DNA of 64,000 nt from Diplonema japonicum (taxonomy: Eukaryota; Protista; Euglenozoa: Diplonemea): positions 248,001-312,000 of the forward strand of contig OZ025674.1 of assembly GCA_964019335.1 (NCBI GenBank), in the 5' to 3' direction. A model generated the notes under the pieces. The model was not told the DNA's origin, ran no database searches, and was given only the letters and a program-made list of their open reading frames with translations. Each line of letters starts with the position of its first letter. Within the stretch, counting starts at the first letter, position 1. Shown here in pieces: positions 4,817-53,900 of this stretch. Position numbers and translations under genes: made by a program.

Positions 4817-5394
4817 TTGAAAAAAAAGGGGGGGTACCTCCAGCTTTGAAGTTTTCCTCGTTCGTTTTTTTTTTTTTTTTTTTTTCCCCTCTTTTTTCCT
4901 CTTTCTTCCTCTTTTTTTTTCAGTCTTATCTTGCCCTTGGATTTTTCAGTCTGAGTTTTTTTTTTCCCCTTTTTTTTTTTTTTCTCCTTTTGGTGTTTTT
5001 ACCTCCTTTTTCCTTTCTCTATTTTTTCTGAAAAAGAAAGCGAGAGGGGGAGAAGAAGGGGAAACATGTGGGACGTTGTGGGAAGAAGAGACTTGAAGTT
5101 TTGAGAAAAAACAGGGGTGGGGGGCAAGGGGAAAACAAAAAAAGAAAAAAAATAAGAAAGGGAAAATGTGTCATCAAAGTTGGAAACAAAAAACCCCCCC
5201 CTCCGCACTCTCCCCACTCTCCCTTTAATATGAATCTCTGATCTTCAATGATTTCCTTATTTATTCCTTCCCTCTTCCCCTCGTGTATGTACCTTTACTT
5301 TCGAGCGACGGAAGGAAGAAGGAAAAAAAAAAAAGAAACTTCCCCCTCCGTTTTTTTTCTCCTCTTCTTTTCTTTTCTTTTCTTTTTTTTAAAA

Positions 5395-5585
5395 GGTGGG
5401 GATAACATGGAAATATAATCGTCGGGTCATCACCGGTAGCGCCCAGTGGAAGAACTTGCAGATGCTCAGGGTGACGAACAGGCAGCAAACTGCATAAGCA
5501 CACCGCACGCATTAAGGACACGACGCGGAACGCAGAAGAAGCTCGGCCGAGGTGCGCCCCCTGTAATCAAGTAGACAGTTCGTGC
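5395..5585 (-). mobile_element. SINE-like short interspersed element, internally deleted copy (family S)
   Basis: Colinear near-identical blocks shared with 35825-36121, e.g. GCAGATGCTCAGGGTGACGAACAGGCAGCAAACTGCA and CACCGCACGCATTAAGGACACGACGCGGAACGCAGAAGAAGCT. An A-rich tail follows on the minus strand. Confidence 0.7.
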
Positions 5586-5661
5586 TTCGTTGCACACTTA
5601 ACGCCACTTAGTGTAGCAATCAAAGCCCCATTTTTTTTCTTCTTCTTTTTTTTTTTTTTTT

Positions 5662-5699
5662 ACCAACGATTCTAAAGCTACAGTTTCTGTACTTTATTG
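5662..5699 (+). ncRNA. Spliced-leader (mini-exon) sequence, 38 of 39 nt, at the head of a retroposon
   Basis: ACCAACGATTCTAAAGCTACAGTTTCTGTACTTTATTG matches the diplonemid-type SL and contains the conserved euglenozoan 3' block CAGTTTCTGTACT(A/T)TATTG. It is followed by GTAT. Confidence 0.92.
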
Positions 5700-6457
5700 G
5701 TATCGACCGTGCCAAGAAAGTTAAATATCAGAGATCAATCGAGAGAAGTGGAAGTGAAGTGAACAGTCGAAAGTTGAAAGGTTGAAAAGTTGTTCAGAAT
5801 AGGAGTACGAAGTTATAAATTTTTTGAAGTGAACCCCTCCCCACTACATCCCACCCCGCCACCAGCCCAAACATGGACCCTTTTCCAGCCAGGGAACCTC
5901 TTAACCCCGAAACCTCTCACTTGGTACCACAAGAATGGGCTGGCGAAGAAGTACTTCCCAGGCCTAATCCCGTTTATCCTCAAATGGCTGAAAGCCCTCA
6001 AGTGGGGCAAGGACGGTGGGCAGGTGTCCAAGGCGGAACTTGCAGTCAGAAAGGATCCACATGGATGGTGAAGACCTAGCGAGCTGGGCAAGAAAAATCG
6101 GCGGAATCCTAATAGTTTTGGACAGGATTCACCAAAAAGGCACGGGGAGTCACCTGATTCCAGCAGAACCTAAGAAATCAGTACACTCTTTGCGTACCCT
6201 AGGGCTCCACAGCCATTCCATCACTGGGTACTCCACTCGACCGGTCTTCGCATCCCCGAAGGTCACCCACCCTATCCTAGAGGAACAGTTACGAACGCAT
6301 TGCATCCTCAACAACTCGCTAGTTGGTTTCACGCCCAAGCTGCTGATGAGATACCACGACGGGCCTAAGGCACTACCACGACAGAAGGGATCAAACACTA
6401 GATGAGTTGATTGTCGTTAGGCGATCCTGTCACATACTGCAGGTTCCCTCAAAGACA

Positions 6458-6491
<34 letters not shown>
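5662..6491 (+). mobile_element. SL-headed, poly(T)-tailed non-autonomous retroposon (family T, copy A)
   Basis: SL, then about 130 nt purine-rich leader, then a frameshifted ORF remnant (5790-6071 and 6016-6405) homologous to ORF 53315-53821 (WLxALxWGxxGGQVSxxELA; SVHSLRTLG; GYSxRPVFASP). A 3' hairpin lies at 6426-6443 and T32 at 6460-6491. The left flank is also a T-run. Confidence 0.75.
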
Positions 6492-24241: not shown

Positions 24242-25045
24242 GGGGTTTCCGAGACTGGGGTGTTGGAAGGGGGGGGGTCAAAAAAGAGACAGGTTTTCTA
24301 ACCTGGGGGTATAATGTTGCCCCGTACTCCTTAGGCATTCTTTGGAAAGAAGATCAAATGTACAGTAAAAATCTTTGGTGGGGGCCCGCTTTAAGAACAG
24401 GATCCCCCTCTCCAATTTCTCCCTTTATGTCAAAAAAAAACCCCCCCCCCAGGGCATTGAAAAAAGAAGTTATAATGAAGAAAACAAAATTATAAGAAAA
24501 TAAAATCAGTCTATTCCCCTCCGTGAAAACTTTTCAGTGCCTTGGGTCAACAGGTTGAAAAGGGAAAATGTGAAGGAGAGAGAAAAAAAGAAGAAGAATA
24601 CAAAAAGTTTTGATATAAAACATATTACCCCCCCCCCCCCCCTCTCTCTTCATTTCTCAACACAGATGTGCGATTCTCATTTATCTATTCATTTATTTCC
24701 CTCCGTTTTTTTTTTTTTTTTTTTTTTTTCAAAGAAAAGAGAATAGGTAAGACATCCACCATAATTTCGTTTCTTTATATCTTGCCGTGTCCTAAATTCC
24801 AAAAAAAAAAAAGTTTGAAAAGTTATAAAAAAAAAAAAAGAAGAAGCAGAAAGGAGTGAGCTGGGAAAGAGAAAGAAAAAAAAAAAGAGAATCAAAAAGA
24901 GGCATTTTTTTTTTGTTCATCTTTTTTTTTTCCTCTTCTCCACCACGTTTTCCTTCACGATAAGGTTTAAAAAAAAAAAAAAGAAAATTCACCACACACA
25001 CTGATATCCCTCTCTCTCTCTGTCCCCCATTTTCTTTTTTTTTTT

Positions 25046-25111
25046 GGCGATCCTGTCACATACTGCAGGTTCCCTTCAAAGACATCTTTTTTTTTTTTTT
25101 TTTTTTTTTTT
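25046..25111 (+). mobile_element. 41-bp 3'-terminal fragment of retroposon family T (copy C) inside a poly(T) tract
   Basis: GGCGATCCTGTCACATACTGCAGGTTCCCTTCAAAGACATC is identical to 6420-6459 except for one extra T. T-runs flank both sides. Confidence 0.85.
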
Positions 25112-25168
25112 GTTAGTGCCCCTCAAGAATTTAAAAAAAAACCACAAAAAAAAAGGGGGAGGGAGGGG

Positions 25169-35507: not shown

Positions 35508-35824
35508 CTTGTTGGTGGGTCGCGGCCCCCCATCATAAAAAAAAAATGAATTTTCTTTTATCAGATAATAATAATACGGCCTATGTCACTGACGTGATGG
35601 AAAAAAAAAAAAAATCCCAAAATTCAGCCAATTCCCTTCCCAAAAAAAAAAAAAAAACCCCACCATCAGATCCTTTCAGCATTATCGTTGAGAAATTGCA
35701 TTTTCTTTTTCTCCGTGAAATTTTATCTGGTGGGGAAACATGGCCACACCCGAACCCCAGAAGAAGAAGAATAAAAGAAAAAAAAAACACCTGCCGCTTT
35801 TTTTTTTTTTTTTTCCTTTTTTAA

Positions 35825-36121
35825 GGTGGTGGGGATAACATGAAAATATAAGAAAAACATCAGATGTGTTGTTCGCTGTTGACCTACTCGTCGGTCATCA
35901 CCGGTAGCACCCGAGTGGAAGAACGTAACGCAGATGCTCAGGGTGACGAACAGGCAGCAAACTGCACGAGCGCAGAATCTTGAACCCCCGGGACGCCCCG
36001 GCTGGGGTTGAGCTGTACACCGCACGCATTAAGGACACGACGCGGAACGCAGAAGAAGCTACAACTCGGCCGCGGTGCGCCCCCTGTAATCAAGTAGACA
36101 GTTCTTGTGCAGGGCGCCGCC
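35825..36121 (-). mobile_element. SINE-like short interspersed element, longer copy (family S), with poly(A) tail on the minus strand and a possible 12-bp TSD
   Basis: Homologous to 5395-5585. The T-run 35798-35822 is the minus-strand poly(A). Flanks AACACCTGCCGC (35786-35797) and AACACCGGCCTC (36122-36133) match at 10/12. Confidence 0.72.
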
Positions 36122-51515: not shown

Positions 51516-53296
51516 ATGAAGTTGGGTCTTCAGCTTCTAGTTGCACTGCAGATATTACAGGTTGCAGTGGCGTCTAGTATGGTGACGCTGAATGGTGATC
51601 TGGCAGTATGTTTTTTTTTGTTTTTTTATGTTCCTGTGAAACATAATAACACAGAAAACCATTGAAAACGAGATTAATATCAGAAGGTGCCAACACCAAA
51701 GCGGGAAGCTGGTTTGGAGCGACACGCTGGCAAGCAAAGTGGCTATGCAGAGTAAGGTGGCACAAATGTATGACGGCCCCCTTTCAATCAAATTAATATC
51801 AAAAAAAAAAAAAAAGGTGTTCCAGCGGAGCAACGATGCCCACGCCACAATACGGGGAGAATTATGGGGCGTTTTCTGGGAATTTCCCGTCGTCAGCAAA
51901 AAATCGGTACAGTGCGCTGTCTGGCATGATAGACAAGTGGTTCGCTGAGAGTTCGAGCTATATTTTTTACGACAGGAGTTTGAATTCTGCGTCAACGCGA
52001 ATGTTCCAGCAGATGATCTGGAACGCAACCGATGAGGTGGGGTGCGCGGTATGCAACGGGATGAGCTCGTGGAGCATGGCCTGTTGGTTCACCGAACCTT
52101 ACTCCGCGATGACCTCCAAGCAGCAGGCGAACATCTTCGACGAAATCACCTGCAATATCATCTGGGTCCCTGCCACGAATGCCCCAAACACAACGGTCCC
52201 TGACACTCTGTCACCGCCAACTGCCGAACCCACGGCCGAGCCTACAAGTGAACCAACTGCGGGACCCACTACGACACCTTCAAACGAAACTGATACCCCT
52301 CTCACGGATGCCCCCAACACCACTGTCCCAGACACACTCGTTCCCAACACAACAAGTCCAGAAACCCTGTCGCCCGACACGGCAACACCGACAAAGATGG
52401 TTAAGAATGACACGCTCGTCCCTGACACATTGTCCCCTACCAACGCACCTGTGGCGTATAAAGGGTACTGGAAGAGTGTGGGGTTCTATTTCCGTGCAAC
52501 ATGGCCACGCGACGATGTAGACACGTGGGTGGCGAAGCTTGTGAAGACGTTGCAGCTTTCTTGGAGCGTCCAGCCGCGTGGCGTACACGCGGTGTACATC
52601 TGTCCTTTGGTGGATGGCAACAAGCCTGTTGGCGACGAGGCGGAACGGCGATGCATGGTGATGAAGAGCACGAGCAGAACGGCTGTGCTTCTGGGCGAAA
52701 CAATGCAAGAATGGAAGAGCTTGGAGAACAACCCGGACGTAGGTGTGTACTCTGAGATAGTCGTTGAGGACGAGGAGAACATCGTAGACTCCAAAGTGAA
52801 CGACATGACACAAGCACTGGGTGCGTCTATGAAGCAAGAAGCACCTTTGTACAATATGGACCATTTAAGACCAGGGTCGGAGTTTCTTAATATCCAAGCG
52901 ATGGGGTTTGACAATGGTGCGCCTGCAGTGGTGGTGCAAGGGGGTACCCCATCAGGGAGATGGTCCGCAAAGCAATCTCAGGACTGGGCTCCCCCTGAAG
53001 GGGACAAGTCCAGCGTGGTGTGGTGGCTGTGGTTGATCCTCGGTTTTTGTGTTTTCTTCACGTTCGCTGCAATGACCTCCTTCCTCGTCATCAAGAGACA
53101 GCGAGCCACAGGGACTCTTTCAGCCGTCACCGTCTCTGAGTTCTACCGAACAATGCCCGAAGGTTTCCTTCCCGGCCCTATCCCTGAGGAGCACTATTGT
53201 TACAACGATGATCTTACCTCGAGATCTTCTGTTGAGCTTGACAGCGCTCGCAGCTTTAATATGAACTTGGGGATACAACCGATAGGCAGAATATGA
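51516..53296 (+). CDS. CAP/SCP/PR-1 domain type I membrane protein; exons 51516-51605, 51655-51767, 51817-53296
   Basis: Signal peptide; spliced NxxRCQH..LVWSDTLA, GEN, WFAE and FQQMIWNATDEVGCA; PT-rich stalk; TM VWWLWLILGFCVFFTFAAM. Confidence 0.85.
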
Positions 53297-53344
53297 GAAA
53301 CTTTTGAAATTCACATGAGTTGTAGGTGTTTTCTTTTTTTTTTT

Positions 53345-53900
53345 CAACAGTGCCTCCCACGGCTCATCCCGCACGTCATCCGATGGCTCTCTGCCCTTCA
53401 CTGGGGCACGACAGGTGGACAGGTCTCCAGGCTTGAGCTGGCCATAGACTTCATTGCCACGGTGGGACTCTCACCTTGTGAAGAGGGTGAGGACATCCAA
53501 GTGAGCGCGCGTGTAATAGGCCGGGTGATAACGGCACTAGAACGCATCCACACCAGTAAGGGCATAGCGCCCCTCATCCCAGCTGCGTCAGTAGTTTCTG
53601 TCCACTCCCTGCGCACGTTGGGTTACTACAACAGCTCCGTAAGGGGCTACTCCTCTAGACCGGTATTCGCCTCCCCGGTGACCCGCCACATCCTTGAGAA
53701 ACAACTGTACAACTATTGTGTCCTTACCAACTCGGTTGAGGGTTTTATACCTAAGGTACCGAGGAGGGTGAACGAGGGGCCGAAGGCCACACCACAGCAG
53801 AAAGGTTCGATCAAGAGATAGATTGAGACTCTTCAGGCGTCCTGCCACATACCGCAGGTACCCTTAAATGTCTCTTTTTTTTTTTTTTTTTTTTTTTTTT
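53345..53900 (+). mobile_element. 5'-truncated retroposon, family T (copy B, divergent subfamily), poly(T)-tailed
   Basis: The open C-terminal ORF fragment is homologous to 5790-6405. Hairpin CCTGC-CACATACC-GCAGG lies at 53841-53858 and T26 at 53875-53900. A T-run also precedes the 5' junction. Confidence 0.75.

Follow-up and report, generated by a model that had tools for sequence, protein, structure and literature searches.

The window, a 64,000-nt stretch of Diplonema japonicum DNA (contig OZ025674.1, positions 248,001 to 312,000 of the forward strand), contains at 5662-6491 what sequence comparison identifies as a copy of a ~6.3 kb non-LTR retrotransposon, here termed family T, that is dead and carries internal deletions. 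The copy encodes no function and has no sibling copies. It starts with the host spliced leader (SL). Its features and those of the related elements in the window are as follows.

5393-5631, + strand: older copy of a SINE-like retroposon (family 4), placed by alignment with loci L032, L050 and L036 and with window 35808-36107
5632-5661, + strand: T-rich run T8CTTCTTCT16, the family-4 copy's T tail, which is also the insertion tract of the family-T copy
5662-5699, + strand: SL, nucleotides 2-39 of the 39-nt exon, identical to the exon at locus L059 minus its first A
5691-5722, + strand: weakened hairpin across the SL/leader joint (predicted fold, complementarity test)
5700-5873, + strand: LINE 5'UTR (alignment; 89-98% identity to the copy on C15)
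5874-5881, + strand: start codon (ATG at 5874) and first codons, ATGGACCC, then the large deletion joint
5882-6405, + strand: C-terminal ORF remnant, frameshifted, with its stop at 6403-6405
6409-6459, + strand: 3'UTR stem-loop closing the element (predicted fold)
6460-6491, + strand: T32, tail or target tract
25043-25112, + strand: extreme 5'-truncated family-T copy, terminal stem-loop and T25 only, with a T run upstream
53290-53900, + strand: 5'-truncated copy of a related LINE family, with an unbroken C-terminal ORF, a similar stem-loop and T26, and a T run upstream

Every component that a sequence-only reading had named at this locus is present in the sequence: 38 of the 39 SL nucleotides, a purine-rich leader (purine content of 66% across 5700-5830), a frameshifted ORF shared with 53315-53821, a hairpin and T32. 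The stretch 5662-5699 is an SL of the kinetoplastid/diplonemid type with its first base missing, and it resembles the diplonemid SL. The 19-mer at its 3' end occurs once in the window and had no chance match in 100 shuffles. The ORF remnant matches at least 12 copies at 93-96% identity and a second group at ~86%, and window 53290-53830 aligns with it in tblastx pieces of 52-60% identity (E 3e-43). An Rfam scan of the window returned one tRNA and nothing else.

The proposal that the copy sits in a T tract was upheld, the tract being the T tail of the family-4 element. This family-4 copy is decayed, has internal deletions and lacks an SL head; intact family-4 copies elsewhere consist of the SL, ~370 nt and T(n). 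T runs lie directly upstream of 9 of 11 SL-headed family-T copies, and of 5'-truncated copies too. Since copies are flanked by T runs both upstream and downstream, family T targets T tracts in one orientation; for the same reason, target site duplications (TSDs) are unreadable. The long ORFs near the window copy all lie on the + strand, which places the copy in sense orientation within a gene cluster.

Several other properties of the surroundings were observed. The word depth of family 4 in one run was ~3000x that of flanking single-copy DNA, suggesting thousands of copies, and at L032 a family-T-like tail follows a family-4 copy at a distance of ~1 kb. Homopolymers are very dense in the window (28 T runs and 22 A runs of at least 15 nt on the + strand over 64 kb), the T runs including retroposon tails. 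Two pairs of long direct repeats, 20574-21085/21844-22356 and 49584-50131/50590-51131, are 100% and 91-96% identical, with spacings of ~1270 and ~1000 nt.

Family T and the deletions of the window copy

Full-length copies of family T consist of the SL, joined directly to a 5'UTR, one long ORF, a stem-loop and T(n). The ORF comprises an N-terminal Q-rich region, tail motifs of an APE-type endonuclease, a reverse transcriptase (RT) and a Cys/His C-terminal domain. The last ~610 nt of the window copy were found with 85-98% identity at 40 scored loci (from 709 first-look candidates), and the matching copies extend upstream into common sequence. A genome search for further copies, as had been suggested, located the SL followed by GTATCGACC at 16 or more loci; at six SL-leader loci (on C72, C83, C34, C87, C48 and C114) the family tail follows 5.0-6.4 kb downstream on the same strand. 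This pairing excludes independent insertion of the SL and the ORF remnant, and the claim that SL and tail form one element is borne out by full-length copies that run from SL through leader and ORF to tail and T(n).

The coding capacity was read from individual copies. An open frame of >540 codons on C72 begins MDPHQLV 255 nt behind the SL. The C84 copy, 5'-truncated behind a T40 run, has a ~1190-codon frame with one stop, a Pfam RVT_1 match (E 3e-24), a Cys/His motif and the same C-terminus as the window copy, which has itself lost the RT domain. The endonuclease C-terminal motifs GD-N, RPDYIL and SHR were read by eye at L061; Pfam gave no match to this piece, which is the C-terminal part of the domain without its ~600-nt core. 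A homolog with 34% identity contains PF03372 and PF00078. A search for homologous proteins yielded seven relatives, the best (52% identity) from a transcriptome, and a protein atlas search gave generic RT/APE clusters only, indicating no clade.

Family-T copies have variable 5' starts, a fixed 3' end (...CAAAGAC(A/C)(T/C)C followed by T(n)) and no terminal repeats. The poly(A) or A-rich tail and readable TSDs by which LINEs are recognised are absent, the tail being T(n). Many LINE clades lack poly(A), however, and so the T(n) tail does not exclude LINE membership. APE-endonuclease (PF03372) matches number >150 genome-wide, from several LINE families and often in open frames of 1400-2000 codons; family-T copies were absent among the 150 that were scored. 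For some matches there is an SL site 1.8-2.6 kb upstream on the same strand (C3:788266/790363, C30:604219/602313 and C20:670773/672558), which indicates that intact SL-headed LINEs of other families exist.

Compared with its closest copies, on C15 and C114, the window copy has lost ~60 nt and 18 nt from its 5'UTR, the shorter segment from between AGTGAA repeats. A large deletion has removed ~5.4 kb, from just after ATGGACCC, where the ORF of full-length copies goes on MDPHQLV..., to ~580 nt before the end. Comparison with L011/C84 places this joint at a GACC microhomology. A further 14 nt are missing at 6046 relative to sister copies, the insert being seen in a run contig, and this loss accounts for the frameshift of the ORF remnant. 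The origin of the large deletion would be either a template switch while the RNA was being reverse-transcribed or slippage at a later time.

The copy is therefore internally deleted, as had been claimed, with SL, 5'UTR and ATG joined to the last ~580 nt. It was further claimed to be a non-autonomous element in the style of RIME or NARTc, and this part did not hold. Although the copy is built from the 5' and 3' ends of an autonomous element, as such elements are, its deletion joint is not shared among many copies: genome-wide, the window locus alone matched across it, and the deleted copies on C15 and C7 have joints that differ from that of the window copy. The uniqueness of the joint leaves the reading as a RIME/NARTc-like family unsupported. 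Misassembly, which had been named as a refuting outcome, did not occur. A contig of an independent public run from another study bridges the joint across 5851-5932, which argues that the joint is genuine, and other contigs cover 5675-5880. These run contigs are Logan contigs of unrecorded run type; SL joints in them that were marked 'between: not known' were taken as approximate.

The 3' stem-loop has the same architecture in the diverged relative at 53811-53874, the differences between the two families preserving pairing. T(n) stands directly behind the conserved stem-loop in all family-T copies, which is not what a polyadenylated mRNA template, giving A(n), predicts. We suggest that the RT binds the stem-loop on an RNA still carrying a downstream U run, whose source would be either a read-through precursor or a transcript terminated at a T run. 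Priming by a nicked A strand on such a U run would explain the orientation-specific insertion into T tracts.

The spliced leader at genomic joints

The host SL exon was defined from two tandem SL RNA genes at L059 on contig 15 (C15:777580-780223; gene pair at 1390-1950). It is 39 nt long and starts AACC. The two units, spaced by 352 nt, have a common upstream flank, the 39-nt exon, an intron starting GTACCC / GTACCCAATC, a terminal stem-loop and, ~93 nt past the exon, a T6-9 run. An SL longer than 39 nt was ruled out, relict joints reading ...ATTG|TTTCTG. Exon+intron sites number nine genome-wide, among them sites on C59, C4, C30, C51 and C107; the genes are singletons or pairs 346-352 nt apart, and no large tandem array was seen. 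At L034 (C2) there is a copy of SL exon and intron that starts at nucleotide 2 and has no promoter, implying that the SL RNA itself gets reverse-transcribed.

An SL 22-mer occurs 228 times in the genome, on most contigs, while its reversed control does not occur. Only 9 of the 228 sites are of the SL-RNA-gene type. The upstream flanks are unrelated, and at least ten different bodies stand behind the SL, which in retrocopies ends exactly at the exon border: every joint is at the exon end. The claim that the locus is a retrocopy with the SL as its 5' end was confirmed by identity to nucleotides 2-39 of the L059 exon. The missing first nucleotide proved to be a rule across families, since ~24 of 31 SL-headed copies at the loci examined start at nucleotide 2 behind a non-A base and ~3 look complete. 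Such starts are what would be expected if reverse transcription were blocked at the cap-proximal nucleotide, for which cap modification may be the cause.

Two kinds of sister copy bear a signature of trans-splicing that the window copy does not have. In the first, the SL is joined at alternative positions: in the family-T copies on C69 and C37 it is joined 28 nt further in, directly behind the AG of ...GGAACCAG in a longer leader, and the copy on C43 has a third joint ~215 nt in. In the second, the SL is followed by a 16-nt relict, TTTCTGTACTTTATTG, and then the body; this arrangement was found at seven loci, one of them a family-T copy (C83) and six others. The relict starts directly behind the SL's own ACAG, and we read these loci as cases in which a new SL was spliced behind the ACAG of an older one. 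At one further locus the relict SL starts behind AAAG. The proposal that trans-splicing defines the 5' end finds considerable support in the alternative joints and relict SLs, unlike the reading as a non-autonomous family.

Re-splicing at the AG inside the relict SL, which would leave a relict of 16 or 22 nt, was seen at 8 of the 228 sites. It had been proposed as the step that closes the replication cycle, and it has happened, including once in family T. It cannot be the main route, however, as ~96% of SL-headed copies have a single clean SL.

Public run contigs also bear on splicing at the locus. The SL depth in them is thousands of times the flanking depth, and they therefore appear to be RNA-derived. 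In them the SL is joined close to two AGs, one at ~6420 and the other at ~6518 (25 nt past T32), the joints being imprecise; among the joints listed, none is a leader joint. The SL joints near ~6420 and ~6518 are consistent with T tracts acting as acceptor signals. Run-contig tails behind 5706 were considered as SL RNA and dropped, SL+GTATCGAGA being absent from the genome within 2 mismatches.

Origin of the spliced-leader head

Family-T copies probably arise by reverse transcription of trans-spliced, SL-capped RNA, the window copy being a deleted example. Family T would be co-transcribed with host genes and its RNA trans-spliced. Translation of the SL-capped mRNA would be followed by reverse transcription from a nicked A strand within a T/A tract. 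This A-strand primer probably pairs with the U run that adjoins the stem-loop in the RNA, and synthesis would halt one nucleotide before the capped 5' end. Insertion into a T tract of the coding strand would place a polypyrimidine tract before each new copy, making a new round of SL addition possible.

A serious rival, compatible with trans-splicing, is that the SL is an inherited and selected 5' module, captured once or a few times by trans-splicing, and that SL plus ~55 nt of leader act as a promoter or start-site determinant. Transcription of each copy would then start within the copy itself, at the first SL nucleotides, and perhaps stop at the T run, with no need for splicing, and the window copy would be a deleted descendant that inherited its SL. 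We hold this to be possible, at somewhat less than even chances. No SL-less source copy with an AG acceptor before GTATCGACC was found in the assembly, where 14 of 14 exact leader starts stand behind the SL; together with the mere 8 of 228 sites with relicts, this suggests that copies may inherit the SL along with the rest of the element. The same SL joint is common to subfamilies whose 5'UTRs are otherwise just 66-86% alike, and the first ~90 nt (SL and ~55 nt) are much better conserved than the rest of the 5'UTR. A similar leader module stands behind the SL in another family (C11, L053), and there are further 82% matches. The trypanosomatid Pr77 element, moreover, binds the SL-RNA-gene factors TBP and SNAP50 (PMC8190864).

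Two further properties of the element bear on this question. In full-length family-T leaders, CCAATAAAG lies 13 nt behind the joint and is predicted to give a hairpin of 9-12 bp that spans the donor-like TTG|GTA. This anti-SL complementarity is a perfect 9 bp in full-length copies (matched by 14 of 1000 shuffles for the C15/C72 type); a deletion in the window copy interrupts the anti-SL segment. A similar pairing between exon and intron is predicted for the real SL RNA, whose intron carries CAATAAA, comparable to the anti-SL segment. The 5.8 kb interior of the element has no T5+ run and its sense strand is T-poor; against this, ~0.9 such runs are expected, so that the depletion is not significant, and the 5'UTR of subfamily A has a T6 run. 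Contrary evidence lies in the alternative joints and the relict-SL tandems, which prove splicing onto element RNA.

The SL could also have been added by template switching of the RT from the 5' end of element RNA onto SL RNA, as in U6/L1 chimeras. Among 15 distinct SL joints, 14 begin with G and 8 with GT, a bias that is not explained by simple acceptor choice and could be microhomology with GGU at the exon/intron border of the SL RNA; the promoterless exon+intron copy at L034 likewise speaks for such events. Microhomology of 2-3 nt, however, cannot give the precision with which the joint falls at the exon end in every family. No family-T copy contains SL intron, and AG dinucleotides immediately precede both the alternative joint and the relict SLs, in the latter case the SL's own AGs. 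We regard this route as very improbable. More improbable still is a reading of 5662-5830 as an SL RNA gene, real or decayed, beside an unrelated LINE fragment, or of the arrangement as an assembly artefact. The locus is rich in repeats and the leader begins GTA like the SL intron, but alignment to the L059 genes fails past this third base, which excludes the stretch as an SL RNA gene; this outcome, too, had been named in advance as a refutation. In real genes the upstream flank is conserved, the intron is a different one, and a T-run terminator follows the exon at ~93 nt. SL, leader and tail recur together at many loci, and an artefact is at odds with the contigs of other runs over 5675-5880 and 5851-5932.

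It is also conceivable, if unlikely, that SL-headed elements mimic an SL RNA gene, with SL-RNA-type Pol II machinery starting at the SL's first nucleotides and stopping at the T run. The parts of such a mimic would be the encoded SL, a GT donor-like joint masked by the anti-SL hairpin, a T-poor body, and the stem-loop with its T run. Were this so, the RNA would already wear the leader needed for translation, and its oligo(U) end would prime reverse transcription on the nicked A tracts of the host's trans-splicing polypyrimidine tracts; trans-splicing would only have seeded, and occasionally reshaped, the SL heads.

Relation to known systems

Reverse transcription of trans-spliced RNA, the preferred explanation, has a precedent in dinoflagellates, where retrocopies with relict SLs have been attributed to mRNA recycling (Slamovits and Keeling; PMC3229502, PMC6050394). 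There, as here, the SL heads the genomic copies and stops precisely where the exon ends, and tandem relicts cut at the SL's internal AG stand behind a full SL (7+1 loci here). Tandem relict SLs show cycling from RNA to DNA to RNA. Dinoflagellates recycle the RNAs of host genes, whereas the RNAs recycled here are retrotransposons, namely several LINE families and a SINE-like family. Relict SLs amount to ~3.5% here, compared with 22-25% of SL-bearing transcripts in dinoflagellates. The T(n) tails, the euglenozoan host and the 39-nt SL are further differences.

The ingi/RIME and L1Tc/NARTc elements of trypanosomatids are LINEs and their derivatives with the Pr77 5' hallmark (PMC1874656, PMC8190864). 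Like family T, ingi and L1Tc are LINEs within the polycistronic units of a trans-splicing host, with a short conserved 5' module common to families and with deletion derivatives made of 5' and 3' ends. Pr77 elements, however, are transcribed from an internal promoter into RNA that stays unspliced, and their tail is poly(A), whereas family T starts with the SL and ends in T(n); and RIME and NARTc are families, whereas the deletion in the window copy is a one-off.

SLACS, CRE and CZAR are SL-gene-specific trypanosomatid LINEs that reside inside the exon of SL RNA genes, in arrays, and use a restriction-like endonuclease. They share with family T a physical tie to SL sequence. Unlike them, family T has the whole SL as its own 5' end and APE-type motifs, and its loci are not inserted within the SL exon of gene arrays; they are dispersed in T tracts with unrelated flanks. 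Stringent-type LINEs such as eel UnaL2 have a 3' stem-loop and a simple-repeat tail. The conserved terminal stem-loop directly before a simple tail is alike in family T, and extreme 5' truncation can leave the stem-loop module alone, as at window 25043-25112. Here, in contrast, the tail is a T homopolymer and the target a coding-strand T tract. None of the dinoflagellate, Pr77 and SLACS/CRE/CZAR systems unites an SL that forms the 5' end of the element itself with T tails and insertion into T tracts, and no description of such elements in Euglenozoa turned up in full-text searches or in the Diplonema genome paper.

Retrotransposons in hosts without gene-specific promoters face the problem of obtaining a translatable full-length RNA. 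The LINEs of trypanosomatids solve it with the Pr77 promoter/ribozyme. Here, several LINE families and a SINE-like family carry the host SL as their first 38 nt, terminate in T runs and lie in T tracts of the coding strand that probably act as splice-acceptor signals, a different and apparently undescribed solution. Interest lies in this family-wide biology, the window copy itself being dead. SL-headed copies are DNA-level proof of RNA-to-DNA recycling outside dinoflagellates, and the SL head is a natural marker for full-length insertions. The families also pose a puzzle in the regeneration of a single clean SL.

Two more SL-headed LINE families, with leaders GTCGTTCGTG and GTCGTCTGTG, were observed near many contig ends, pointing outward (L042, L035, L044 and L054, at the ends of C5, C2, C6 and C11). 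These elements break off at arrays of an 8-nt repeat, which is CCCGCAAA when read outward. The strand whose 3' end points to the contig end is the C-rich one, opposite to the usual telomere polarity. At L054, SL fragments are joined directly to this 8-nt repeat.
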